In this document: positions 198 through 14,595 of the stretch, piece after piece
Layout of the letters: every line of letters begins with the position of its first letter
Numbering within the stretch: position 1 is the stretch's first letter
Assembly (NCBI GenBank): GCA_002794465.1
Contig: MTSL01000150.1
Location: 74,590 to 89,334 of the forward strand
DNA: 14,745 bases
Reading direction: 5' to 3'
Origin: Paramicrosporidium saccamoebae KSL3
Lineage: Eukaryota > Fungi > Cryptomycota
Notes under the pieces: model-generated
Told to the model about the DNA's origin: nothing
Seen by the model: only the letters and a program-made list of their open reading frames with translations
Database searches by the model: none
Made by a program: the position numbers and the translations under genes

Positions 198-2058
198 TTA
201 AATGAGGCCTTGCTCCTCCCAGGATTTATACAAGACTTTTTCTTCCTCTTCTGTCAATGGAACCTCTCTCCGCACAATTTCAGGAATCGGGATTGGAATG
301 TATCGCTTGTCTATAACATTGACCAGTTCAGACACGAGGATCGGCAAGAGTCCACGCAAATATGGTTCTAGAAAGGAAAACTGCTCGTCACTGCTGAAAT
401 GGCGAGCAAAGTAGATTGTTGTAATGAACTCTCGATGCAAAAGTTTTACAGGAGGCGCCATTTCCACTACAAGGACCTGGTTCAGCACCTGAACAAACAC
501 TAGAATGTCGGGCAGCGAAGATGTGAGATCAGCCCTTTCCTTATTTAGGGCTAGACAAGCAAGTCGTCGACTTAGTTGGCGAAGTGTTAGTGGCTCAAAT
601 GCCACACTTGCGGGCAGAACTCGGCTGGAGACTAATCTGAAAAGCATCTGGACTAGAGCCCTCTCTATTTCCCCAAGCTATAACATGATCAGGCCACATA
701 CGATGAACTGTACCGGTGTCTGGTATGGGTGCTTCAAAATTCTCTTTACAAATATATCATTGAGCAAATTAAGGAGTGAGCAATTAACTGAAGGAAACTG
801 TTTGAGAAGACTCATTCCAAGTCGACTGTCAAACACCATCATCCCGATCAATTGTAACATATCCAATAAAATTTCCAGACGATCTGGATAGAATGCACTC
901 AGCCTCTTGACCAAAACTCCCATATCAAGAAGATTAAATATGTGCTCCGGTAGGATCTGTGTCTCGCCGTATAGGATATGCTTGAGGATTCGCAAATGCT
1001 GGTGGACGATTGTCCCACATGCACCATCTTTCAAGTCAGCCAGAAACCGACACAGATCACAAAACAAGTCACTGGATGTCGGAAAGTCATCATTTTGCAG
1101 CAGCGATTTTGCAGATGGCGAGACTACATAGTCTGGAATGCCATTCCTGATCAAGGGTCCAACTATTGGATTCAGGCAGACGAGGAATTCAAGAATTAGA
1201 GATACGTAATAAATGATAGGATTCAAGGAATTAGACTGAAAAAAATAGTGTACCTTTTTTTCTTTTACAGCCCGGCAATACTCGTATTCAACTGCCAACA
1301 TGACGTTTTTCGTAATAGTCGCAATTCTTTGCACAGAATCTCTTCGCTTAATGGATTCTTGTCGATCGTCATCAATAACATCCTCATTCGCTATTTATCA
1401 GTCTAAAAGTATGGAGCTTACCAAAGGTGAGATCAGCAAACCCAATGGCATGGAACAGCATTTCCAGTGTAACCGCTCGGGGGGATGTGCCGTTGATCCT
1501 CAAGGTGTCAACCGAGGTTAGTATATCGTCTACTTCACAAGAGGTCTCTTGTCGAGTAGATCTAATGACCCTTGATCTTTTCTGTGGACTCAGCAGTTCA
1601 TCGAATCCTGAAGTGAAACTGCGCGATACAGAGGCCTGGTATGCATTCACTGCGGTTGGAACAGATCGTATTTCATTCTCTTTAAACTTTAGCTCTGTTT
1701 GAAGCCGCTCGATTTCTCGTTTCCAATGCAACAGAAGCGACTGCCGTTCTTGCTCCATCGAATTCAGCTTTTCCGCATGCCTCTTGGACAATTCGTATTT
1801 TTCCGACTCAAAATGGGTAAGCTTTTGGCGAAGTAGAGCCACTTCTCCTTCTTTGACTACCTTTTCCTTTTTAATGGTTTCCAATTCTTTGGAAATCTCT
1901 TGGACCTGCCTGTCTAATTCTGTAAGCTTGGAATGCGCATGGTAGCTCTGCTCAATATTATGACTTGCATGGTTTGTCATGAATTGTGTTTCTTGCTGCT
2001 CTATCCTCTTCAGGTCTTCAGAGCTAAGGTCAAAGTCAAAGTCGGCTGTAGCCATCAT
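198..2058 (-). CDS. ATRIP/Rad26/Ddc2-like checkpoint protein, about 601 aa, 3 exons
   Basis: Exons 2058-1422, 1390-702 and 677-198. Introns 1421-1391 (31 nt, GTAAGC..TAG) and 701-678 (24 nt, GTATGT..TAG) join three track ORFs in frame (..DLTF-A-NEDVIDDD..; ..VQFI-LGEIERALVQMLFR..). The protein has an acidic N-terminal motif (DFDFDLSSEDLKRIEQQ), a coiled coil containing KEGEVALLRQKL and EIERLQTELKFKENE as in ATRIP/Rad26, and a Leu-rich helical C-terminal half. Confidence 0.65.
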
Positions 2059-2169
2059 GGCTGATGAAATGAATGTATTTTCTTATTTATTCGCCAGTCA
2101 GACTTTCTTCATGTAAGCTCATCACAGTTACAGACTTTTTGACGGGCTCGCTTCAATTGGAGATTGTTG

Positions 2170-2592
2170 TTAACGTGAGCCCATATAAACTACAGAGTCT
2201 CCCTTCATCGCCATCTCAGCCACGAGTTTTTCCCTCATTGCAATTTTCTGACGGCGCATTACACTAAATGGATGAGATTGCGCCGGAACGCTTACTCTTG
2301 AATCATGCATGCTTCATAATGATGCTTCTCGTACTCGCATTTCCATGGAAGGTAGTACTCACGCCTCTGACACCTCTTTAGCTCAATTAGCCAGTGAGCA
2401 CAACAGTCGCGAGATTGTAGTGGAATTTGATTGAGTGCCATTTCTTCGTCCGTAACCTTCATCACTATAGCATTTACCACACAACATATCAAGCATCATA
2501 CGTGGCGCCGAGAGGTCAGCGCTTAGCAATTCCTCATTTGTCATGTCCTTTGGAAAAGTAACATTCGGAACTGAATGTCCAGCGGGAGTCAT
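2170..2592 (-). CDS. NDUFB7: NADH:ubiquinone oxidoreductase (complex I) subunit NDUFB7/B18, about 117 aa, 3 exons
   Basis: Exons 2592-2502, 2464-2296 and 2263-2170; introns 2501-2465 (37 nt) and 2295-2264 (32 nt). The spliced product reads MTPAGHSVPNVTFPKDM..MKVTDEEMALNQIPLQSRDCCAHWLIELKRC..KCEYEKHHYEACMIQDVMRRQK. It carries a twin CX9C motif and the RD.CAH.LI signature. Confidence 0.9.
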
Positions 2593-2702
2593 GCTTTCAG
2601 AGAAGCCTGGCCAATCGAAATCTGATCTCAATTTGCTAATTGCGCCGGGATACCCTCTCCTTTCAATGCCTTCCTCGTCACCAGGTACACTCCACTGACA
2701 CA
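2593..2702. promoter_or_regulatory. 110-nt bidirectional promoter region between NDUFB7 and the phosphate carrier
   Basis: It is the only non-coding sequence between two divergent ATGs (2592 minus, 2703 plus) and contains GGCCAATC. Confidence 0.6.
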
Positions 2703-3692
2703 ATGGTCTCACATGTAGCTATTTCCACCAGCAAGCCGGGAATTCCACTATTTTCACCCGAGTTCTATGCGGCGTGTTCAGTGGGTGGGGCTCTTTCCTG
2801 TGGCCTGACACACACTTTGGTTACTCCGCTCGACCTTGTCAAATGCCGCCGACAGGTAGGCCCTCAACTACCCCGTCATTGATGAGTGTAGGTGGACCCT
2901 AAGCTGTACACGTCGATTGTGAACGGGTGGAGCACAATTTATCGCACCGTGGGCGCTCGCGGACTTACGGAAGGATGGGGCCCCACCTTGATCGGGTATT
3001 CCATGCAAGGTGCCTGCAAGTTTGGCTTCTATGAATACTTTAAAAAGACCTTTGCTGACATTGCAGGCCCCGAGCTTGCCAATCAATATCGCACGACTCT
3101 CTACTTGACTGCGTCCGCCTCTGCCGAAGTCATTGCCGATGTTGCTTTGTGCCCCATGGAAGCGCTAAAGGTTCGTATGCAAACATCAGTTGTTACTCCG
3201 TTTGCCACTTCTGCTACCGCTGGCTTTTCTCGAATTATCCGGGAAGAGGGAGTTGCTGGCTTGTATAAAGGACTTGCACCCCTTTGGATGCGCCAAGTTC
3301 CTTACACGATGATGAAGTTTGCCGCCTTTGAAAAGACTGTCGAAGCGATTTATAAATATGGTCTATCCAAGCCCAAACACGAGTACAACAAGCTCGAGCA
3401 ATTGGGTGTTACCTTTGCTGCTGGCTATTGGGCTGGAATCTTTTGTGCTGTTGTTTCTCACCCCGCCGATACTGTCGTGTCCAAGTTGAACAATATCAGC
3501 AGAGCTCCGGGCGAGGGAACTGGAGCTGTTATTGGAAGGATTTTAAGCGATCTTGGTTTCAAGGGCGTGTGGCGCGGGCTTGGAGCTCGTATCGTAATGA
3601 TCGGCACCTTGACGGCCCTTCAATGGTTCATTTACGATACTTTCAAGGTTTACGCGGGCCTCCCTACATCTGGTGCAGTTGAGAAGCGTTGA
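2703..3692 (+). CDS. PIC2: Mitochondrial phosphate (and possibly copper) carrier, PIC2/SLC25A3 type, about 317 aa, 2 exons
   Basis: Exons 2703-2855 and 2892-3692; 36-nt intron 2856-2891 (GTAGGC..TAG). Carrier signatures are [20 protein letters not shown] and [29 protein letters not shown] resembles the Pic2/SLC25A3 clade more than Mir1. Confidence 0.92.
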
Positions 3693-4038
3693 ATAATTAA
3701 AGTCATTTAATAAATGATTCGAAATGTGAATGTTATGGAGCTGGTATGTTATAAAACAAGTGGCACCCGTGGTTCATTGACGGCTCCAACCTGGTGTGTT
3801 GAACGCGGCTATATTAGTCATAAGCGGATACGGTCTCGCAATACCACTTTTTCGATAATATATATAAATGAGTCGAGCAACTCTAAAATTGACCAAACGC
3901 ACCTTGTGATCTATCAATATGGCGTGTCAAAAACTCTACAAGACACCTTACGGCCCATTCGAAGGGGAAACTTTAACCGACAACAGTATGGGAGTAGCAA
4001 AGAGGTTACTGACGACATGGACCGGATATGGTCCCGAG

Positions 4039-4288
4039 CCATCAAACAACTATTAGATCTACAAGATACCTTATGAACCATCAAACAACTCTTAGATCTA
4101 CAAGATACCTTATGAGCCATCAAACAACCCTCAAATCCATCAACACACTCCCACGATCCATAGAACAACCCTCAAATCCATCAACACACTCCCACGATCC
4201 ATAGAACAACTCTCAAATCTATCAACACACTCCCACGACCCATCGAACAACCCTCAAATCTATCAATACACTCCCACGATCCATCAAC
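4039..4288. repeat. Compound minisatellite: two 39-bp units, then four 41-bp units and a partial unit
   Basis: 39-bp units start at 4039 and 4078 (CCATCAAACAACT[A/C]TTAGATCTACAAGATACCTTATGA[A/G]). 41-bp units start at 4117, 4158, 4199 and 4240 (e.g. CCATAGAACAACCCTCAAATCCATCAACACACTCCCACGAT). A partial unit starts at 4281. Confidence 0.95.
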
Positions 4289-4351
4289 AGCTCCGAAATT
4301 GGTCGAGTAAGAATAATTACCATTTTATCGAGTGACTACTTCAATTTCTCT

Positions 4352-5325
4352 TCAAAGGGCTGAGGCCCCAGTGATAATATCCACGAGCTCATTGGTAATG
4401 ACAGCCTGGCGAGTCCGATTATACTTCATGGTCAACGCTACGACAATGGCTTCGGCATTCTTTGTAGCATTCTCCATAGCAGTGCGCTTGGAACTCATCT
4501 CTGATGCGTGGCCTTCCACCAGAGCCCAGTACAGGCGTGATACGTAAAGATACTCCGCAAGATTGTTTACCGTCTCGGGCTCGTACTCGTAGGCTGCAAG
4601 CTTTTCCGTGCCCAGAATAGCGGCTGCACTGGGGGGCTTGGCAATCACCGGCTCAAAATTGATCGCACTGACGAACCGGTTGTAAATGATTGCAACCTGA
4701 TCAAAGTCAAGCTCAGCTGCGCGGATCCCTTGCCAAATTACCAAAGCATCTAAGAAAGTGGGTATATTACGTCCGACTTGATTAAAATGCATCACAATGT
4801 TGCGACGAGCATCGCGAGAGACTTGAGGCTTGGCCTTATCACCAAGAACAGCAATTTGGGTATGTTCGCGATCCTGGGCCGCTAGACGACGAGTGACCTT
4901 TGAGACAGAGCTATGAATGGCACCGCAAAGACCACGGTCGGAAGAGCAGGTCAAGATAAGAGCCTTTTTAGAGTTTCCATCTTTGTCCCTTGTGATGTTG
5001 ATGGTTGGCTCTGTACCAAGAACATAGTCGTTTCCAGTCTCAGGAATCATTCCAAGATGATGTAGAAAGTCTATTAAAGTTGAAAAGAAACGGAAAGGGT
5101 ACTTTGAGTGGTTTTTCCGTACAGGCGACCCGCTTCCATACTCTTGGAAGCCCGATTAAGCTTGGTTGAAGCAATCATTTTCATTGACTTTGTAATTTTC
5201 CCAATGTTCTTGATAGACTTTAGACGGAGCTGAACTAGATTCTGAGCGTCTTATGGTGGTTTACTATCCTTGAGGGTGGCATATGTGCGCACCGGAAGGG
5301 TCAAAGTGGCCTTACTGAGGAGCAT
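4352..5325 (-). CDS. ATP3: Mitochondrial F1 ATP synthase gamma subunit, about 303 aa, 3 exons
   Basis: Exons 5325-5265, 5234-5103 and 5070-4352; introns 5264-5235 (30 nt) and 5102-5071 (32 nt). Splicing gives presequence [15 protein letters not shown], then [42 protein letters not shown] and [23 protein letters not shown] are also present. Confidence 0.97.
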
Positions 5326-5419
5326 TGGGCGGAGTCGGTGGTTGGGAGTAAATGCGCAATGTCGCCACCAGGGTTCCGGATGGACCGAAATTGCCAATTG
5401 ACAAACTAGACAGTACACA
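5326..5419. promoter_or_regulatory. 94-nt bidirectional promoter region between ATP3 and OPA3-like
   Basis: It lies between divergent ATGs at 5325 (minus) and 5420 (plus) and contains GCCAAT. Confidence 0.6.
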
Positions 5420-5965
5420 ATGGTTATGCCGGTCGTAAAATTGGGCTATCTATTCGTCAGAACAGTGGCCAAGCCCGTCTCATCCGTCATCAAGCAACAG
5501 GCCAAGGACCATCCCAAATTCAGAGAGGCATGTGTTCGACTGGCACAGCTGTATCACCGAATGGATGTCCGCTGGCGACGTAGATTAGCAGCAAGAGCAG
5601 GCGAGGACATTTCTGCCATTGTGCGACCGTTGGACGAACAGAAAGCCGTAGACTTGGGCGCCAGCTTTATTGGTGAAGCACTAATTTTCGGAGTTGCTGG
5701 CACTCTTCTCGTGGCCGAAGCCGCGAGAAGTAATCGGGCGGAATCTGCACGTCGAAGGCTCATAGAAGATCGTTTTGAAAAACTCTTTGAGGATGTCTTG
5801 AATTTGTCAGCAAGGCAGCAGGAACTGACTGACCAACTTGAGGCCGCTGATAAGAGAAGAGGTCAAGTACCAAAGGTTGAACCCGAGCACCAGATTCTGA
5901 GGTCGAAGCTTGAGCCCGAACAATACCATTTAAAGCCAAAGCTTGAACCAAGTATCGAAATTTGA
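5420..5965 (+). CDS. OPA3: OPA3-like mitochondrial protein, 181 aa
   Basis: N-terminus KLGYLFVRTVAKPVS..IKQQAKDHPKFR and the central RPLDEQKAVDLGASFIGEALIFGVAG match OPA3 family motifs. A coiled coil follows. Confidence 0.9.
   Translation: MVMPVVKLGYLFVRTVAKPVSSVIKQQAKDHPKFREACVRLAQLYHRMDVRWRRRLAARAGEDISAIVRPLDEQKAVDLGASFIGEALIFGVAGTLLVAEAARSNRAESARRRLIEDRFEKLFEDVLNLSARQQELTDQLEAADKRRGQVPKVEPEHQILRSKLEPEQYHLKPKLEPSIEI
5870..5950 (+). repeat. Degenerate 33-bp coding repeat (about 2.5 copies) at the OPA3 C-terminus
   Basis: Units start at 5870, 5903 and 5936 and encode PKVEPEHQILR / SKLEPEQYHLK / PKLEP. Confidence 0.6.
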
Positions 5966-6012
5966 GGCCGAAAATTGTTGCCATTAGGAACGGAAAATAG
6001 AAAACTTTGTAT

Positions 6013-6597
6013 TTACAAATCGAGTTCATTTAGAAACTGATCAACTTGAGCTTCAAGATGATTTCTTTTAGATACACTTGGCTCGGCACTAATAATCAGA
6101 CGGTTAGTGGGACGAACAGACTCATTGCCATCAGTTACTTTGTTAAATATTCGATAGGGAGGTAATCCAGGAACACCAGTCTCTAGTGGGTCGTCGTCAG
6201 GCAGCGGAATGTGACAATCCTCGTCGAACCATTCGGTTGTTTGAGGCTCAACAGTTTTGTCCTTGTCAAGATCTTTTTTGCGATTTAGATACTCCTCTGG
6301 GTCGAATTCAGGAAGAATCATTGAAGGCATTCCTGCCTTTTCTCTTGCCTTGTTTAGCGCAACAAACTGATCCTCCAGGTGCTTCCTTCTTAGGCGGCCC
6401 GGCCCATCCAGGCGTCCTTTCGCCTCTGTCTCCCGTAGCCGTTCAATTTCCACCAGCAGTTTGGAAGGATCTCTCCGAGCAAGAGGTGTCTTGGACAGTG
6501 CCTCTTTTCGTCCGGCCCGTTTTCGCTCAGACTGCTTTCTTTTTTGCGAACGACGATATGTCTCTACTGGATGAAGGGCCCTCTTCTCCCGTCCCAT
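6013..6597 (-). CDS. WBP11: WBP11 (WW-domain binding protein 11/Saf1-like) N-terminal domain protein, splicing associated, 194 aa
   Basis: The basic N-terminus LHPVETYRRSQKRKQSERKR..RRDPSKLLVEIERL resembles the Wbp11 domain (NPAD.FRK.QRKKE..KDP..EI). An acidic/Pro-rich tail follows (IPLPDDDP..PGLPP). Confidence 0.7.
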   Translation of the reverse strand: MGREKRALHPVETYRRSQKRKQSERKRAGRKEALSKTPLARRDPSKLLVEIERLRETEAKGRLDGPGRLRRKHLEDQFVALNKAREKAGMPSMILPEFDPEEYLNRKKDLDKDKTVEPQTTEWFDEDCHIPLPDDDPLETGVPGLPPYRIFNKVTDGNESVRPTNRLIISAEPSVSKRNHLEAQVDQFLNELDL

Positions 6598-6627
6598 TTC
6601 GCCAGGGCCTGCCGGAGACGTCCCATA

Positions 6628-7494
6628 ATGTTAATAGGCGGCGTGAATCCCACTGGTAGAGTTACTTTGTCACCTAGCGAGATGCAGTATATTGCTGGCG
6701 GCATCAAGCAAAACCTACGGGCCGATGGAAGGAGCCGCGTGGATTGGCGCGTTGCTAGTGGCGAACTGGGCCCAGTCCCTCAGGCTGCCGGGTCTGCTCG
6801 TTTCCGTCTGGGAGGGACAGACGTCATTGTCAGTGTAAAGGGAGACATTGGAAAGCCAACACTAGAAAAGCCACTAGAGGGCTCAGTTATTTGCACAGTT
6901 GATAGCTCTACCGTATTCTCCATGAACTCTTCCCTGGGAGGCACAAACGAGGACCGTCAAATGCAGCAACGTAATGACGAGCTCACTGTCATCCTGAATG
7001 ACATTCTTGTCAAATCTGGGGCCATAGATCTCGAGCTGTTTTCGCTCGTTCCGGGAAAGCACTGCTGGGTCCTTTACATTGATGTTCTTGTTTTGGATTA
7101 TGATGGAAACTTAATCGACACTATTGTCATGGCTGCCAGGCTCGCCATCTCGTCTATGAGGCTGCCCAAAGTGCGCATTGAGGAAGGAGGAGAGGCTACT
7201 GAAGTAGTCTTAGCCGAAGACGTAGACTCTTCTCGCATCATTGACATCTCTCGACTGCCTGTAGCCGTCACAATAGGCAAGCTCGGAGACGGATTCCTTG
7301 TGGATCCATCTGGTGCCGAAGAAACTTGTTGTGACGCTGGCCTGATTATTGCCCTTCTTGGTGATAACGTAGTGATGATGCGTAAACTGGGGTGTGGAAT
7401 GCTCGATCCAGGTCTCTTGACAGAGTACATTTCCGCTGCCCAGACCGCATCCGTTCATCTTAACACGTTATCATCCAATTGTATTTCAAAATAG
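6628..7494 (+). CDS. RRP42: Exosome complex RNase PH-like subunit Rrp42 (EXOSC7), about 288 aa
   Basis: Motifs LSPSEMQYIAGGIKQNLRADGRSRVDWR, GSARFRLGGTDVIVSVKG and CWVLYIDVLVLDYDGNLID are present. The ATG at 6628 is preferred over the track's non-ATG start at 6544, which overlaps WBP11. Confidence 0.9.
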   Translation: MLIGGVNPTGRVTLSPSEMQYIAGGIKQNLRADGRSRVDWRVASGELGPVPQAAGSARFRLGGTDVIVSVKGDIGKPTLEKPLEGSVICTVDSSTVFSMNSSLGGTNEDRQMQQRNDELTVILNDILVKSGAIDLELFSLVPGKHCWVLYIDVLVLDYDGNLIDTIVMAARLAISSMRLPKVRIEEGGEATEVVLAEDVDSSRIIDISRLPVAVTIGKLGDGFLVDPSGAEETCCDAGLIIALLGDNVVMMRKLGCGMLDPGLLTEYISAAQTASVHLNTLSSNCISK

Positions 7495-7505
7495 AAATTT
7501 ATTTA

Positions 7506-8767
7506 CTAGCGTACACTCACAATAATACTAAGAACAGCGCCGAGTAGGGCTAAAGCTAGTAATTCTACAGTGACACCAAGGCTCAACTGCCAAGGTATTA
7601 GCACCAGTGATCGATTTCGTGTTCTGCTGCAGACCATTTCAAGCTGACTCAGTAATGCAAGCATCTGGCCAGACGTAGGATCCTCTAACTTTACATGTCT
7701 CCTTATTTTGTGCAGCGAATTATGTAGCATTGATTGATAGTCGCACAATCCGTGTAAATCTCGGCATATTGTCGCCAAGCTATTAATCTTGATACTCTGA
7801 TCCTGTCTTGAACGACTCTCGTAATGCTCTACCAACATCTCAATTGCATAAATCTAAACATGTCCACAAGACGGAGCAAAGACCTTACCTGTGGGATGGC
7901 GAGCAGGCGAAAGACGAGTGGACTCTCCAGTCTTGACAACAAGTGAAAGATATCTGGAATATGTCGCATAGCATCAAGTATCATATGGTTGACGAAAAAT
8001 CTCGTCGCAATGCCCTTGTCTGGGTTTAACAATTCGGCCAGCTCTCCCTCGCAGTAAATCTCCCAATATTCGCGAGGTAATGGCGACCGATTCGGATTTG
8101 CAACAGTAGTGAATTCTGCAATTACGCGGGTTTTTGCAAGTAAGAGACCGGCAGAGTTGCAAAGATGCACTTCATTGGCAAGATATGGATATTCCAGACG
8201 ACCTGCAGCTGCCACCATTTTCATAAGCACAATCCAGTGTAGTCCCCCATGAAAGTGGCAATACAAGTTGTACTCGGCGGCAGTTCTCAATGAGAACCTC
8301 TTTAGTAAGTCAGCAAGGCCTTCAGCCGTCCGAGCGACCCCCTCTAGAATAATGGCTTGGAGATGCGATTCTATGCACTGGAATTCAGATAACAGGAGAT
8401 CAAAGTGCCACATGGCCTCTCCCATTAGTTCCAGCTCGCATGAATTTTTGCCATAAAAGCTATTAGGATCTTGCAGATATCTTGGAAACTCTGAAAAAAC
8501 CTTGCCTTTAGCGTCCAGTGTCATCGTTTCATCGTTTTGAGTAGCAGAGAGGCAGTGAACAAGTAGCAAATAGGTGCAAATTGAAGAGCGGACACTAGGC
8601 GGCATCTGATCCACAGCCAGAGCAATGATGGGCTCCACGTCGCACAATAACAGAAAACACTGCAATTGGACCACACTTTTGTGGTGATCACACTCCTTAG
8701 CATTACCGAGCTGTCTACGGTACCAAGCGAGGTCCAGACATGCGTCAATTATTCTTGCAAGACCCAT
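7506..8767 (-). CDS. Squalene synthase (ERG9/FDFT1)-like protein lacking catalytic motifs, about 408 aa, 2 exons, C-terminal membrane anchor
   Basis: Exons 8767-7889 and 7853-7506; 35-nt intron 7888-7854 (GTAAGG..TTTAG) gives AIPQ-IYAIEMLVEHY, matching SQS AIPQVMAIATL. Other SQS landmarks are YCHF.GGL, NSAGLLLAKT, PREYWEIY, HIPDIFHLLSRL and a hydrophobic C-terminal tail. Both Asp-rich motifs are absent. Confidence 0.85.
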
Positions 8768-8820
8768 GACAACAACTCACTTCCAAAACGGGCAATTTAT
8801 TCATCTTTGAGTTATAGGGT

Positions 8821-10116
8821 TTATGTTTCGCAAGGCGAACAAAAGTTTAGACCCCAAGGAAAATAGCAGTGATCGTCTACCGAGTATCCTAAATGCGCGG
8901 CAGCACACCTTGGATCTTCTCCCGAGCTGGGATCACAAGCATAAGCAGAGCTGGTCTTTTTTGAACCGGGCGGAATGAAAATCTCCTGTGCGGATTGATG
9001 GTATTCTAGAAAGTAGGGAGGGACATGCGGCACAATATCATTTCCATTTGTTACACGTAATCGGTCAAGGGGATCTGGAAAATGCTTCTCAACTAACCGT
9101 GCAAAGTCGTCATTTCCCACTCTAGGAGCCCCATAGGACGATAACTTTACCTTTTTCGCAAATGACAAGCTTTCGTTGAGTTCCATGGCACATATTGTAG
9201 CCAAGGCTCCGCCGAGTGAATGTCCTACAACATGTACAACAAAGTCGGGATGCTCGCCCAGAAGGGAGGTGACATGCATGATTACCTCTTCACTCACCGA
9301 CTCATAGGCTAGTAAAAATCCTTCGTGAACTTTTGGCTGCCGAAGTCCAAAGCATGATCGACGCCATGGGATCACTGTCATCACTGCGTACAAATTGTAG
9401 AGCCAATTGATTAGAGTATAGCTGCCGCGGAATGAAATGTAGATTTCTCGCCTTTTCAAATTCACTCCCATGAATCCCGCTATTTGTGTCTCGGGATTAT
9501 AAAAGTACTTTGATACTTTTATCCCGTTCGCCCCTAACCATTAGTGCTACACTCTGACTGCACCTCGACAACGCGATCCACATGTCCAATCCAATACCTT
9601 TGCCTTGTCGCAATAAGCCACACCCGCCACGTAGCCACGGTACATTAGTTCTTGCTTAAGCTCCTCGGATATTTCAGGCGGGCGAGCCTTGTATATTGAC
9701 TCCATCTTGAAGTGCTCTGGACGATCCAAAGCAATTGGAAGTGTCTTGAGAATCTCCAATTCGTCAGGCTGGAGAGTGCTTCGAATTTTCAACCCCACAT
9801 GAATCCTTACTGGATCGTTGGATGTAGACTTTTCCACTGATTCGTCTGACTTGTTGATAGAGCCCACATCTTGAAAAGGCGTGCTGACAAGAGTCATGTT
9901 AGTCTTTGGGATAGATGTGTCGATAGGAGCCGTGTTAATCTCTAACTCGCGCGGATTAGTCTCTGGGTCAAACGGGCTAGCCACTGGATCATCACCAAAC
10001 GAGTCAATTTCTGGACTGGGCGACGTAGTGCCCTCAATCTTTCCTTGCATTCCTTCTAAAGGGAATGATCGAAGACTTGCAGTAAACAACGTAATGGCTA
10101 GCAGTAGAACGCGCAT
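8821..10116 (-). CDS. Secreted class-3 (fungal-type) triacylglycerol lipase, about 421 aa, 2 exons
   Basis: Exons 10116-9564 and 9533-8821; 30-nt intron 9563-9534 (GTGCAG..CACTAATGGTTAG) gives CRGANGIKVSKYF. Signal peptide MRVLLLAITLFTASLRS, with an alternative in-frame ATG at 10140. Motifs: ISFRGS, VHEGF, VVGHSLGGALA, GAPRVGN, DIVPHVPP and DDHCYF, so the Ser-Asp-His triad appears complete. Confidence 0.92.
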
Positions 10117-10469
10117 TTTCACTGCTTGTCCGATAGCCATCGGGTATGATTAGGCGGATCATTTGTTTGTGCCCGCCAACTCTGCCGTGACTGTCCAATG
10201 AGTGGTGGCACGTTAATCTATTGATCCCAGCTTTATGTAACATGGCGCTCTTGTCGATGAGCTTTTTATAAGAACATGTATTGCGTCCGCTACACCATTT
10301 AAGATTGGGCATCGGCTTACTGCTGTTATGATGGGCGTTGGCCAATAAAAATAAAGCCATTGTTTTCGAATATTTTGAGCAATTCGGCCGGGAGTGTCAT
10401 GGTAACGGCAAATCCTGATGAGTATACAATCAATAGCCACCAACCAAGATCCAGAACCGCTTAAGGAGG

Positions 10470-12566
10470 ATGAGTATGGGGATTCCGACGAGGCACCGAG
10501 CGAATAGGGTGCTCCTCCATTTATGGATGCTTGTTGCCTGCCTCTTGCGGCCGATTAACGGACATGTCTCAGCGGGAGAGACTCTCCAGGGCGAGGACAT
10601 GGTGCCTTCCAAAGAGCAACTTGACACACAGTTTGTGGGTATTCCGGGAATTGCTCTGAGTGGTGATCCCGGCCTGGAAGCTGATCTCCTTGTCAATGAT
10701 GCTCTGGAAAAAGTCGCCGAAGATGTCACAGAAAAGATTCGAGAAATGGAACCAGTCATGGGGTCAGAAGAGGAGAAGACTGAAGTAAAGGTTCCTGAAG
10801 AAGTCCTTAATGACGCAAAAGAAGAACCTGAAAAGATCCGCTCAGCTGCTAAAGAGACTACTGATAGTGTGCAGCCCGTCCAACTGGTAAAAGAGAACAC
10901 GACGGACAATGAAGAAAATGCACAGACTTCTCAAGACAAATCGGAAGAGGTTGTTGCCAAGGATACTCAAGAAGTAGATTCGGAACATCAGGTCATTGCA
11001 GGATCGATTGAGGAGCACATTGCCAAAAAAATTGAAGACGAGCTGGCACCTGAAGAACCTATTGCTCTAGTCGAGAAGCAAGAAGAGGAACCAGCCCCCA
11101 GTGCAAGTGGTGAGACAATGCTAACTGGAATTTCCACCACCGTCATCAGCACTTCTGGGACAACGACGACATCAATCGCAACGGTCACTTTTGATCCATC
11201 GTTCACAAGAATCCGCCGCTGCATTTATGGCTGTCGCACTCTGACTGTCGAGTCTGGGTCCGCCAAAGCTGGGTTGGCTGTAGTTGCCTTGCCGGTTACG
11301 TTGCCATGTTCGCTAGTCAATTGTCCGCCGTGTGGGTGCACCACAAGCTTTGTCCACATCATTGGATGTCCAATAATTCAGACTGTAACCCCTCCAGATT
11401 CCTATGTCACGGTCACCAATGACGCCACTATCACCTATATCACAGTCACAACGACAATTTCTTCCTGTACAGCCACCACATGCTTGACACCCATCACTGT
11501 GACCGTAACTACTGGTCCTTCTGGGATAACCACCATTACGCAATACTCTACATTCGACCTAGCCACCACCATCATACAATTCTCGACTGAGAGGGCATAT
11601 TGCACTCCGACACCGATTATTCCGGATTGTCAATGTCCAGCTGGCTACGATTGGGATGGGCAATCAGATCCACCACCGGATCCCTGTGCCGGATCAATTA
11701 TTCCTCCAGATTGTCCTTGTCAGCCACAGCAGGAGGAGGAAGATTGTGGTTGCGATCAGGAAGGTGATTGTGACGATTGTGATGATGAGCACCCACAGGG
11801 CGTCGTACTCGTACCAGTGCAAGGCGGTTGTCCTGGTGGCCATTGTCCCTGGTACAACTTTAAGGCAGAGGCTGGTAAGGACGACAAGAAGATTTCCGAT
11901 TCCAAAGATGCCAATAATGCTGTCAATGCCAAAGATGGAAAGGGCACTGTAGGTTCTAAAGAGGGACAAGTGGATGCTAAGGAAAAGAAGGCAGTGGGCG
12001 CTGATGGAAGAATGTCGGCGGACGGAAAGAGAGTCAAGAAAAAGTGCAAGAAATGTCACCCGAACAAGCCCAAGAAGGGGTGCAGACCAGCTCCCATGGG
12101 CGGTGCTTGTCCGACTGGCAACCATCCGGCCCGTACTGGTGCTACTTCCACCATCACCGGTTCAATCTGCACCACGTTTGTTGTTTGCAATCCTTCCCAG
12201 TTTAACTGTCCTGCCCAAATTACTGGCGGCGCACAGCTCCCCGCCTTTATGGAATCTTGGGGATTAGCTCCCAACAAAATTCCAGGCGGCTTCCCCTATG
12301 CCTATCTAGCTGGTGGAATGCCACAACCTGGTATGGAATATCTCGGATACGACGGAAACATGCACGGGATTGGGGCGGGATATGCTCCATTGAGGAATGC
12401 AACTGAGCCGACGTCCATCTCAACGACAGCATCCGCCTCAACCACGACAAAGAAGAAGGATGTAAGAATGGAAGCAGCCTCAAAGAACTCTGCTATAACC
12501 CTTGCCGGATCAACAATCCTCTCCATGGTTATCGCAGTATGGGTTGTCCTCTCGTCCTGGGTTTGA
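10470..12566 (+). CDS. Orphan secreted, putatively GPI-anchored or C-terminally anchored Cys/Thr-rich surface protein, 698 aa
   Basis: Uninterrupted 2097-nt ORF. It has an N-terminal hydrophobic signal (VLLHLWMLVACLL), an acidic domain, Thr-rich and Cys-rich segments and a Ser/Thr stalk. It ends in SKNSA plus a hydrophobic tail with no cytoplasmic domain. Confidence 0.8.
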   Translation: MSMGIPTRHRANRVLLHLWMLVACLLRPINGHVSAGETLQGEDMVPSKEQLDTQFVGIPGIALSGDPGLEADLLVNDALEKVAEDVTEKIREMEPVMGSEEEKTEVKVPEEVLNDAKEEPEKIRSAAKETTDSVQPVQLVKENTTDNEENAQTSQDKSEEVVAKDTQEVDSEHQVIAGSIEEHIAKKIEDELAPEEPIALVEKQEEEPAPSASGETMLTGISTTVISTSGTTTTSIATVTFDPSFTRIRRCIYGCRTLTVESGSAKAGLAVVALPVTLPCSLVNCPPCGCTTSFVHIIGCPIIQTVTPPDSYVTVTNDATITYITVTTTISSCTATTCLTPITVTVTTGPSGITTITQYSTFDLATTIIQFSTERAYCTPTPIIPDCQCPAGYDWDGQSDPPPDPCAGSIIPPDCPCQPQQEEEDCGCDQEGDCDDCDDEHPQGVVLVPVQGGCPGGHCPWYNFKAEAGKDDKKISDSKDANNAVNAKDGKGTVGSKEGQVDAKEKKAVGADGRMSADGKRVKKKCKKCHPNKPKKGCRPAPMGGACPTGNHPARTGATSTITGSICTTFVVCNPSQFNCPAQITGGAQLPAFMESWGLAPNKIPGGFPYAYLAGGMPQPGMEYLGYDGNMHGIGAGYAPLRNATEPTSISTTASASTTTKKKDVRMEAASKNSAITLAGSTILSMVIAVWVVLSSWV

Positions 12567-12646
12567 ACAGAATGAATTTGGGTAAAGCGCAGAATATCAT
12601 CGATCTATTAATAGAAGTGCTTAAATGATTCGTTTATACACTGGCA

Positions 12647-13438
12647 TCATAGTTCAAAGCCTTTAAAAAAGCATGGGAACCAATATTGCGTGGTATCCAT
12701 TTGCTTGTCTATCCACGCGAGGCCATCACTCAATAAAGCCTCAATCGCCCTCTCAAATCGTTCCCGTTGCCAGCCAAGCGTTTCATAGCAATCTTGTGAG
12801 ACAAATCCACTACTTTCTCCCACAGAGAGTAGCTTGGTGCCATCGGGCGACAATTCCAGCGGGACTGATTGCAGGGCCTTACGAGTACCCAGATCTATTA
12901 TCGCGTAGCCCGAGCCCAGGGGCCTCAATGTAGCCACCGCTCTCGAAATATCATCACTAAAGTCAAATATCAAGTAGAATGAGGTACTCTGAGACTTCAG
13001 CCGCAGTCCTCGTCCGAAAACGGGCGACCCGTTTCTTGAGAATGTCAAGATCCGTAAGACCTCCAGTCTGCTCTTGCACTACAAGACAACTCTCCACTAT
13101 TTGAATCCCGAGCTCATAATAAAAGTCGCCAACACCGAGCATATCAGCCCAAAACCCTTTGCTCGAGACGAGCGGGTCAACACCAATGGAGCTGCACATT
13201 TTCTGAAAGTGGCCACGAAGCATTGGGTTCTTTTTAATGTCTTTTTGGTGTTTATGAGCAAACTCTTCAAGACTCTTCTTGAAAACTTCCAACTGGCTCT
13301 TCAACTGCTCAATTTGGGTGGAGGCCACTGCCTGTCCAATCTCTTTAAAGGTATCCTGACATTATACAGTTTTGCCAGTGATAGTACCCTCGCTGCGGCT
13401 TGCTTTTGGAGACCTCCAATTCCCACACCTCTTCTCAT
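12647..13438 (-). CDS. SNF8: ESCRT-II subunit Snf8/Vps22/EAP30, about 242 aa, 3 exons
   Basis: Exons 13438-13388, 13355-12988 and 12956-12647; introns 13387-13356 (32 nt) and 12987-12957 (31 nt). Motifs MRRGVGIGGL, FQKMCSSIGVDPLVSSKGFW, GVGDFYYELGIQIVE and GLAWID..YWFP are present. Confidence 0.95.
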
Positions 13439-13522
13439 CCCTCCAATCAGCAAGGACCTCCTAATTCGGTCATATTTGGAAATTCGCTCTCCAAATCTGG
13501 CTTGCGTTGGGAATCCCACGCA

Positions 13523-14595
13523 ATGTCCAGTGCAGATGATCACTCACGGGCGGGGTTATGGATATTTTTTTACTTTGCCGCCAATCTCCTTTTGACATTG
13601 CATAACAAATGGGTGCTTTCTTCGCTTCACTTTAATTTTCCGTGGACTCTGACGGCGTTGCACATTTCTGTCTCTGGCATTGGCTCCTATCTTTTGCTAG
13701 TGTTTCTCTACCGGATTCAACCAAGTGAACTGGACCACAAGGCGTGGACTAAGCTATTGCTATTCAGTGCCCTTTACGCTGCCAACATTGCGATCAGCAA
13801 TGTAAGTTTGGCCTACGTGTCTCTTGCATTTCACCAGCTTATACGTTCAGCAACTCCGGCATTCACAGTCTTGTTGGAACTCGTCCTGTTCAGAAAAACA
13901 CGTACCCTTCGAATCTACTGTGCTCTACTGCCAGTCGTGTTGGGGATCTGCATGGCCACAGTTGACGAGTTTTCAGATATTTCGTTCACCGTCACAGGTC
14001 TCTGTCTGACTCTGCTTGGGGTGATATTGTCCTGTGTAAAGGGAATTATAACAAACGTCCTTATGGTTGGCCCACTCCGTCTCCATCCACTCGATCTGAT
14101 TTGGCGCATGGCGCTACCTTCCGTCCTGCAGTGTCTTGTATATGGGTCCATTTTTGGCGAGCTGCAGGCACTTCCGAGATTTTTCAAAGCCGTTGACGTT
14201 GGTGGAACGACGATGAATACGGCGGTCGCCGACAAACTGCTGATCAACGGTCTGCTGGCCTTGTGGCTGAACTGGGTTAGTTTCACTGCCAACAAGAAGA
14301 CCTCTGCCCTTACCATGACCGTTGCAGGCAACATAAAGCAAGCGCTCTCTGTTGTGTTGGCCATATACATTTTTGACTCGCGCATCACCTCTTTGAACTT
14401 TGTCGGGGTTGTGATTGCTCTTTCTGGTGGTACTTGGTACAGGTATGTCCGTGTTTTGGACTAATACTATAACCTTTTAGTTACGAGTCCTTCCGCGAAC
14501 AACAGAGAACCATCCGTGACAAGAGCAGCAACGATCAACCGCACTCAAACTTGGGCTTAAATTCATATTCGATTGTCCGTAATCAAAGCGTATAA
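13523..14595 (+). CDS. Triose-phosphate/nucleotide-sugar transporter family (TPT, SLC35E-like) membrane protein, about 344 aa, 2 exons
   Basis: Exons 13523-14442 and 14481-14595; 38-nt intron 14443-14480 (GTATGT..ACTAAT..TTTTAG) gives WYSYESFREQQ. Motifs NKWVL..FNFPWTLTALH, SNVSLAYVSLAFHQLIRSATPAFT and TSALTMTVAGNIKQ are present, with about 10 hydrophobic segments. Confidence 0.88.

Follow-up and report, generated by a model that had tools for sequence, protein, structure and literature searches.

What is left of an enzyme once the residues with which it worked are gone? This is the question raised by a gene annotated as 'Squalene synthetase' in Paramicrosporidium saccamoebae KSL3, which lies in a stretch of 14,745 nucleotides of contig MTSL01000150.1 (positions 74,590 to 89,334 of the forward strand, assembly GCA_002794465.1), referred to here in its whole length as the window. 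P. saccamoebae lives as an obligate parasite inside the nuclei of Saccamoeba amoebae and is positioned between Rozella and Mitosporidium/Microsporidia, with a 7.3-megabase genome in which many pathways have been lost and which, unlike Rozella and Mitosporidium, keeps complex I (PMC5701793). The original prediction for this locus had guessed at a parasite as the source of the DNA, which turned out to be the case. Altogether, the data collected here indicate that the product is probably a maintained, tail-anchored, non-catalytic pseudoenzyme derived from squalene synthase (SQS; ERG9/FDFT1) and that, to judge from its residues, the name in the database would overstate the capability of the protein.

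The relationship with SQS is clear from several sides. A phmmer search of the PDB sequences recovered human SQS at an E-value of 2.6e-32, a level at which chance is excluded as the source of the homology, with amino acids 36-363 of the protein aligned to 15-338 of the crystallised chain through three small gaps and an identity of 23-24%. The Pfam SQS_PSY model was passed narrowly (29.1 bits versus a cut-off of 26), whereas the match to TIGR01559, the NCBIfam equivalog model of squalene synthase, spans positions 5-336 of 337, that is, end to end, at a score of 147.9 bits that stays below the equivalog cut-off of 286.75 (orthologs reach 151, 130 and 57 bits, and a canonical fungal control, P0015, 454 bits). 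In this line, the top matches in both the sequence and the fold searches of the PDB were the human, T. cruzi and Aspergillus SQS, with the dehydrosqualene synthase CrtM far behind. An AlphaFold2 model showed an all-helical structure (mean predicted local distance difference test score, pLDDT, of 74.7; predicted template modelling score, pTM, of 0.77) with a terminal helix at residues 385-407. When this model was compared with the PDB by Foldseek, the first 42 matches were all SQS chains (E-values down to 1.9e-13, target-normalised TM scores of 0.84-0.90, and 0.88-0.90 for human SQS, 3vj8), and CrtM appeared only at an E-value of about 1e-3, so in the predicted structure the SQS fold is retained. 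The structural residues that are kept include YCH, NS.GL, K213, P232, W, LSRL, F286 and AIPQ, and a DPxS hinge is also present in the protein. The highest Kyte-Doolittle 19-mers begin at amino acids 385-389 and coincide with the modelled terminal helix. The by-eye alignment on which the original prediction had relied agrees with the near-gapless phmmer alignment, and both the assignment to ERG9/FDFT1 and the C-terminal hydrophobic anchor that it had proposed are borne out by these searches, as is the SQS fold by the structure prediction that it had put forward as a check.

Head-to-head prenyl condensation requires both Asp-rich motifs. In SQS they read 80-DTLED-84 and 219-DYLED-223 and bind the diphosphates of farnesyl diphosphate (FPP) via Mg2+, and changes of Asp to Asn or Glu abolish the activity (PMC10378455). 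Tyr171 donates the proton, the departing diphosphate is stabilised by Arg218 and Arg228, a flap is made up of residues 50-54, Phe288 is required for the second half-reaction and 314-VKIRK-318 is the proposed site for NADPH, the reduced nicotinamide cofactor (PMC10378455), whilst the diphosphate head groups are contacted by Ser51/Arg52/Ser53, Tyr73, Arg77, Asn215 and Arg218 (PMC4006925). At these positions the window protein carries E, P, I and I in the flap, L67 in place of human Y73, H71, then S74, Q77 and N78 in the first motif, R214, A217, then E218, T221 and V222 in the second motif, L288, and K315, N317 and S318 in the putative NADPH site; Q212 is also lost. The motifs quoted by the original prediction (EPII at amino acids 45-48, HCLSATQND at 71-79, YCHFHGGLHW at 169-178, LAKTRVIAEFTTV at 210-222 and IKINS at 314-318) were all found at the residues that it had given.

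When 1.84 billion representative proteins were searched with a profile, 861 matches were obtained, and this list splits sharply: the window protein and eleven relatives (P0002-P0010, P0013 and P0027, all of them metagenomic sequences from ENA, JGI and Logan assemblies) are motif-less, whereas from P0011 downward the matches are canonical, with nearly invariant motifs. SRSF, DTxEDD and DYLED are absent from the window protein and from 11 of the 11 relatives, so the replacement of the catalytic machinery, as first proposed for the window protein, extends to the whole group. The first motif, 80-DTLED-84, and R77 are 97-98% conserved in canonical SQS and lost in all clade members; of the second motif, with N215, R218 and R228, only R228 is kept, and in the window protein alone; and F288, a Phe in 97% of canonical SQS, is a Leu in 7 of 8 clade members. 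Among 33 functionally annotated positions of the human enzyme, nearly all polar residues for catalysis or binding are replaced in each of the eight long clade members. The replacements moreover differ from one member to another (S/K/K/Q/T/R/T/N at D80, E/R/R/R/N/Q/-/G at D219, R/T/T/D/H/H/I/A at N215, and Y/F/F/K/H/L/Y/Q at Y171, with Tyr only in the window protein, as Y169, and in P0010, and hence without constraint across the clade), so that no alternative active site is apparent, a pattern that fits release from catalytic constraint and not a remodelled site. Of 69 columns conserved at 90% or more in 111 canonical SQS, the window protein keeps 26, mostly structural L, G, C, P and W residues. 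Cavity positions mainly stay hydrophobic (L183, F187, Y276 to L or F, F288 to L). As to the bulky pocket residues pointed out by the original prediction, a sequence-level comparison shows that V175 changes to H/Y/N/L/R/S in the clade and V179 to H only in the window protein. With both Asp-rich motifs, the basic and Ser residues for the diphosphate of the second FPP, Phe288 and the putative NADPH site lost, neither presqualene diphosphate (PSPP) nor squalene would be made by the known mechanism.

The eight long members form one clade with a bootstrap of 200 out of 200 (neighbour-joining, 300 columns), at the end of a long branch whose mean distance to canonical SQS is 2.23, versus 0.97 among canonical SQS. 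Among relatives outside the clade, the first 150 are all of SQS type, nearly all of them with canonical motifs and a few degenerate. In the neighbour-joining tree the clade has as its sister P0122 of Chlorokybus, itself degenerate, an unreliable placement that is most likely a case of long-branch attraction. The top canonical matches come from a mixture of taxa (Diphylleia, lamprey, Ramicandelaber, Cyanophora, Paraphysoderma, Geosiphon and Stenamoeba). On these two grounds a more specific placement within SQS was set aside, and the origin is assignable no more finely than 'eukaryotic SQS'.

SQS-like proteins with degraded motifs are also found in unrelated eukaryotes (P0057, P0122, P0119 and P0082). 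Diphylleia rotans has a degenerate SQS-like protein (P0057) alongside a canonical SQS (P0011), the degenerate P0122 of Chlorokybus atmophyticus is 718 amino acids long, and P0119 represents an environmental cluster; to go by such sequences, SQS paralogs may have lost catalysis several times.

Gene order was read on the window and on six metagenomic contigs (L001-L006), leaving out P0005, P0007 and P0155. In the four long loci (window, L001, L005 and L006) it runs Lipase_3, SQS-like, RNase_PH (convergent), Wbp11, OPA3, ATP synthase gamma and Mito_carr, and the short contigs L002, L003 and L004 agree with it as far as they extend. This common neighbourhood identifies the SQS-like genes as orthologs within one Paramicrosporidium-like lineage. 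The depth of that lineage can be read from the neighbouring exosome subunit, which is 57-68% identical, while the SQS-like protein is 26-42% identical; its 42% identity between the window and L001 is comparable to that of faster neighbours such as the lipase (40-54%) and an LCD1-like gene (41-46%).

The block conserved around the gene comprises more than ten genes (window 213-14446 versus L001, L005 and L006), among them those for a TPT transporter, a 698-amino acid open reading frame (ORF), Lipase_3, the SQS-like protein, RNase_PH, Wbp11, OPA3, ATP synthase gamma, a mitochondrial carrier, NDUFB7 and the LCD1-like protein, with order and orientation kept at 30-87% protein identity, a microsynteny that is unusually stable for eukaryotes this divergent. 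Directly upstream of the SQS-like gene, the window has one class 3 lipase gene (8827-9822, minus strand), where the relatives have two or three in tandem (L001 861-4439; L005 7483-9932; L006 8112-9912). The 698-amino acid ORF (10470-12566, plus strand) has no Pfam match and resembles, only in part (47-53% over two short stretches), a syntenic, unannotated ORF of 574 amino acids in L005. A small ORF at 2295-2462 (minus strand) is 82% identical to the complex I subunit NDUFB7 of L005, consistent with the reported retention of complex I.

Has such a gene been kept, or is it on its way out? Ratios of non-synonymous to synonymous substitution rates (dN/dS) were calculated by the Nei-Gojobori method for the three close pairs in which synonymous sites are not saturated: 0.13 for the window versus L004 (dN 0.098, dS 0.741), 0.08 for L001 versus L003 (dN 0.059, dS 0.735) and 0.23 for L005 versus L006 (dN 0.132, dS 0.580). 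The adjacent RNase_PH gene gave 0.03 and 0.08 in the same pairs, with a dN of 0.018 for the window versus L004, and the SQS-like gene thus evolves about 2.5 to 5 times faster than RNase_PH at non-synonymous sites, yet it is clearly constrained. Values of 0.08-0.23 in three close pairs are not those of a decaying pseudogene. Moreover, at least seven lineages have full-length intact ORFs, with identities as low as 26-28%. The claim of the original prediction that the gene is maintained and not a recent pseudogene was in this way upheld by dN/dS, intact frames and conserved synteny.

A profile of constraint, taken in windows of 20 residues for the clade and for the 111 canonical SQS, indicates where constraint is concentrated. 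In canonical SQS, conservation is highest at the motif windows (0.78-0.80) and lowest after residue 320 (0.21-0.32), whereas in the dead clade the motif windows are average (0.45-0.58) and the highest values lie at 261-280 (0.72) and 341-400 (0.60-0.67). Residues that are invariant or nearly so in the clade and rare in canonical SQS cluster in the C-terminal part: S354-G-Q-M; R370, R372, N373 and S375, which belong to a C-x-R-x-R-N-x-S motif located just ahead of the membrane; and G386, I389, E390 and G398, within the predicted anchor helix. A W-x-L-x-x-G-x-x-I-E motif follows the first one. Six of six clade members have E390, which occurs in 0% of canonical SQS. Such an invariant acidic residue, with glycines on either side of it in a single-pass helix, is a typical mark of intramembrane helix-helix contacts.

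The gene model itself required some revision. The spliced coding sequence of 1227 nucleotides encodes 408 amino acids with no internal stop, whereas the GenBank protein 'Squalene synthetase [Paramicrosporidium saccamoebae]' (P0001), recovered by a word-indexed protein search, has 353 amino acids and is otherwise identical. The GenBank model uses the same donor and an acceptor at 7689, resulting in a 200-nucleotide intron (7689-7888, minus strand) and in the loss of 55 codons, which appear to be real ones. It was set aside in favour of a 35-nucleotide intron on four independent lines of evidence. Intronless ortholog ORFs of 400-410 amino acids on five metagenomic contigs include the segment that follows the short intron, with the homologous 55 residues; the relative L004 (82% amino acid identity) has a 36-nucleotide GT-AG intron at the identical codon, after AIPQ; the 55 codons show a dN/dS of 0.20 and no indels against L004, which is the pattern of a coding sequence; and two other genes of the window have introns of 31 and 32 nucleotides. 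In the PDB sequence search the 55 residues align to helices of human SQS, and they are conserved in all orthologs. Intron removal is needed in two species, the window organism and L004, at a conserved position. A gene-model artefact, with a wrong frame or hidden introns, was also considered as the cause of the missing motifs and discarded, since the motif regions lie within one uninterrupted exon that is gapless against human SQS, and the intronless orthologs show the same losses. The stop-free spliced ORF of 408 amino acids with its canonical intron therefore stands as originally described; the coordinates proposed for it were right as well, and the strand, which had been left out, is the minus strand. 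The coordinates of the gene and its features are collected in the table.

The two mini-introns of the neighbouring genes, both GT-AG and frame-restoring, have 32 nucleotides in the ATP synthase gamma gene (5071-5102, minus strand) and 31 nucleotides in the LCD1-like gene (1391-1421, minus strand), and intron lengths of about 31-36 nucleotides seem to be usual for this part of the genome.

Table. Features of the SQS-like gene and of its product, in window positions (aa, amino acids of the 408-residue product).
Feature	Position	Strand	Basis or remark
Whole gene, SQS-like protein, 408 aa, two exons	7506-8767	minus	MTSL01000150.1:82095-83356 (GCA_002794465.1), annotated 'Squalene synthetase'
Exon 1, codons 1-293 (Met ... 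LLAIPQ), ATG at 8767	7889-8767	minus	ORF reading
Intron, 35 nucleotides, GT-AG (GTAAGG...TTTAG)	7854-7888	minus	splice restores the frame
Exon 2, codons 294-408 and stop (7506-7508)	7506-7853	minus	ORF reading
Remnant of flap and second-FPP diphosphate site: human S51-R52-S53-F54 to E45-P46-I47-I48 (EPII)	8624-8635	minus	alignment; roles from PMC4006925 and PMC10378455
Remnant of first Asp-rich Mg/diphosphate motif: human R77-A-L-D80-T-L-E83-D84-D85 to HCLSATQND, aa 71-79	8531-8557	minus	alignment
YCHFHGGLHW, aa 169-178, versus canonical YCHYVAGLVG; Tyr171 equivalent kept	8234-8263	minus	alignment
Remnant of second Asp-rich motif: human LQKTNIIRDYLED to LAKTRVIAEFTTV, aa 210-222 (N215 to R, R218 to A, D219 to E, D223 to V)	8102-8140	minus	alignment
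IKINS, aa 314-318, where canonical SQS has VKIRK, the proposed NADPH region	7779-7793	minus	alignment
Juxtamembrane segment DPTSGQMLALLSQLEMVCSRTRNRSL, aa 351-376; among the most conserved in the dead clade and among the least in canonical SQS	7605-7682	minus	conservation comparison
Predicted C-terminal tail-anchor helix, aa 385-407, with G386, E390 and G398	7512-7580	minus	hydrophobicity, model and conservation

A pseudoenzyme is a homolog of an enzyme in which the catalytic residues are gone and which is kept under purifying selection, and homology, residues, dN/dS values of 0.08-0.23 and synteny would all place the window protein in this class. The most likely reading of the residues is that the job that it retains would be a new, non-enzymatic one. 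The loss of the catalytic residues would predate the split of the sampled lineages, namely P. saccamoebae and its uncultured relatives, with purifying selection since then. What is predicted to be a tail-anchored membrane protein would have kept the all-helical fold of SQS, and with it a central cavity that is largely hydrophobic. The clade-specific invariant residues and the high constraint in the juxtamembrane segment and the anchor suggest that the retained role runs chiefly through this C-terminal region, and it would depend on the intact helical domain as well. The most likely way of action is that the polar face of the anchor helix binds a partner in the membrane, and the gutted catalytic domain could serve as a cytosolic scaffold or as a holder of a hydrophobic ligand, either isoprenoid or sterol. 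A more detailed version may be put forward tentatively, as a possibility that falls well short of being the expected outcome: the protein would be the sole surviving ERG9 ortholog of sterol-auxotrophic parasites, a tail-anchored receptor or scaffold whose old FPP/squalene cavity binds a host-derived isoprenoid or sterol, and whose juxtamembrane motif and intramembrane Glu dock a membrane partner. If this were true, a pathway enzyme would have been turned into a component for lipid scavenging or sensing at the endoplasmic reticulum or nuclear envelope of an intranuclear parasite.

Several points weigh against a non-catalytic, maintained protein and have to be set beside the above. Synonymous sites are saturated in comparisons between the major lineages (proportions of synonymous differences, pS, of 0.77-0.85), and selection was thus measured on three recent branches only; the contrast in constraint is semi-quantitative, as canonical SQS by nature aligns poorly in its C-terminal part and the clade sample comprises 6-8 sequences; the AlphaFold2 model behind the fold match was built on an alignment of only eight sequences; and the absence of activity is deduced from the roles of residues in other SQS. 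The equivalents of Tyr171, Arg228 and Asp85 remain in the window protein, and newly invariant polar residues in the catalytic domain, N198 and H201, would make a different chemistry possible. In this regard, the protein might still be an enzyme, either a head-to-head prenyl synthase that has diverged or an enzyme of another kind that modifies isoprenoids or lipids, in both cases with a reorganised active site and possibly a new substrate, a view to which the preserved fold and hydrophobic cavity positions (L183, F187, Y276 to L/F, F288 to L), the polar residues invariant in the clade (D265, R279 and K212 besides N198 and H201) and the Tyr171 equivalent of the window protein would lend themselves. 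It is nevertheless rather improbable: no acidic cluster substitutes for either Asp-rich motif and the residues found there vary among the orthologs, unlike what selection for catalysis would leave; the diphosphate-binding S51/R52/S53, R77, N215 and R218 are all gone; Tyr171 is F, K, H, L or Q in orthologs; constraint is strongest outside the catalytic core; and replacements of Asp by Glu or Asn are by themselves enough to kill SQS (PMC10378455). The opposite extreme, a relic of ERG9 decaying after the loss of sterol synthesis and still open by chance, would suit a parasite with many lost pathways and the dN of 0.098 against 0.018 for the neighbouring RNase_PH in the same species pair, but it is effectively refuted by the selection data (0.08-0.23 in three pairs). 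A relic would also be at odds with the intact full-length ORFs of seven or more lineages (identities as low as 26-28%), with an intron position that is kept, splicing being required in two species, and with the invariant C-terminal motifs of the clade, and it is left with a practically negligible probability.

Other proposals accept a non-catalytic protein and differ in the job that they assign to it. A special case of the pseudoenzyme reading takes the protein as the non-catalytic partner, or the regulator, of a second enzyme encoded at another place in the genome, be it a canonical SQS or another sterol or isoprenoid enzyme. The GPPS small subunit and PDSS2/Dlp1 would be the analogues, and pseudoenzymes of the isoprenoid-synthase fold often act in this manner. 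The conserved anchor with its intramembrane Glu suggests a membrane partner, and D. rotans provides an example of an organism with both canonical and degenerate SQS-like proteins. SQS, on the other hand, is not known to act as a heteromer, and of the top-scoring canonical relatives, 20 were looked up by name and 0 of them came from Paramicrosporidium, which is weak evidence on a second ERG9. Steroid metabolism has been reported as missing in the related Rozella (PMC8371127), and neither the text and supplements of the P. saccamoebae genome paper nor other papers yielded a mention of a second canonical ERG9 or of a sterol pathway in this species; likewise, no discussion of Paramicrosporidium sterol genes was found in the literature. 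Altogether, a partner of this sort is unlikely, though it keeps a real share of the probability. Much further down comes a complex I assembly factor of NDUFAF6 type, or a takeover of that role. In its favour, NDUFAF6 is a non-catalytic protein with the SQS_PSY fold, P. saccamoebae has complex I, and the gene neighbourhood includes NDUFB7 genes. From end to end, however, the window protein is of SQS type: the C-terminal helices specific to SQS are there, and so are AIPQ, the DPxS hinge and the tail anchor, and the alignment gives no sign of a mitochondrial presequence. The best matches in the PDB, in NCBIfam and among the 1.84 billion representatives, with them the first 150 relatives outside the clade, are all of SQS type and speak against a grouping with NDUFAF6; this evidence is indirect, given that no NDUFAF6 sequence was in the tree, and such a function looks very improbable.

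The preferred reading, a maintained pseudoenzyme on the SQS fold, has consequences that go beyond this gene. A full-text literature search for an SQS-derived pseudoenzyme or a catalytically inactive SQS-like protein found nothing relevant, in accordance with the original prediction, which knew of no described ERG9-derived pseudoenzyme, and an SQS-derived, tail-anchored pseudoenzyme with an ortholog family of its own thus appears to be undescribed. Pseudoenzymes on the isoprenoid-synthase fold are already known, such as NDUFAF6 and the small subunits of prenyltransferases; the present case is an unusually clean one, with the whole catalytic inventory gone, fold and anchor kept, syntenic orthologs and measurable purifying selection, and with orthologs that indicate the hinge and the anchor as the site of the new function. 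It would offer a natural separation-of-function allele for the non-catalytic role in protein contacts that has been proposed for the C-terminus of SQS, and a handle on the rewiring of lipid metabolism in early-diverging relatives of microsporidia during reductive evolution. On the practical side, pathway reconstructions that count 'Squalene synthetase' as ERG9 would wrongly credit P. saccamoebae with squalene synthesis.

Comparison with known systems helps to define what is particular to this protein. With ERG9/FDFT1 (EC 2.5.1.21; TIGR01559; PDB 3vj8, 3wca and 7wgh) it shares full-length homology, the class I isoprenoid synthase fold and the order of catalytic domain, hinge and single C-terminal anchor, but it lacks the DxxED motifs, the SRSF flap, Y73, R77, Q212, N215, R218, F288 and VKIRK, reaches half the equivalog cut-off, sits on a long branch and has its constraint moved to the hinge and anchor. 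NDUFAF6 (C8orf38), believed to be non-enzymatic as well, belongs to another branch of the SQS_PSY superfamily, is mitochondrial and has neither the SQS-type C-terminal helices nor a tail anchor, whereas the window protein comes from SQS proper. The small subunit of plant GPPS and PDSS2/Dlp1 also have an isoprenoid-synthase fold that lost its Asp-rich motifs and was kept under selection, but they derive from head-to-tail chain-elongating synthases and pair with a catalytic paralog, and no catalytic partner is known for the window protein. Divergent members of the family such as SSL-1/2/3 of Botryococcus and the bacterial HpnC, HpnD and CrtM, sometimes annotated as 'squalene synthase-like', keep the Asp-rich motifs and are active on a part-reaction or on other substrates, whereas the window protein has neither motif. 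A parallel for a function outside catalysis is provided by the hinge, with its polar helix, and the C-terminal region of fungal SQS, for which a role apart from catalysis has been proposed in contacts with later sterol enzymes of the endoplasmic reticulum (Kribii 1997, Linscott 2016, as summarised in PMC9399743 and PMC9260892). In the dead clade the matching hinge and anchor, putatively a part for protein contacts too, rank with the best conserved regions; in SQS proper this part varies between lineages and goes with an active enzyme, whereas the clade described here carries its own invariant C-x-R-x-R-N-x-S and W-x-L-x-x-G-x-x-I-E motifs beside a dead domain.

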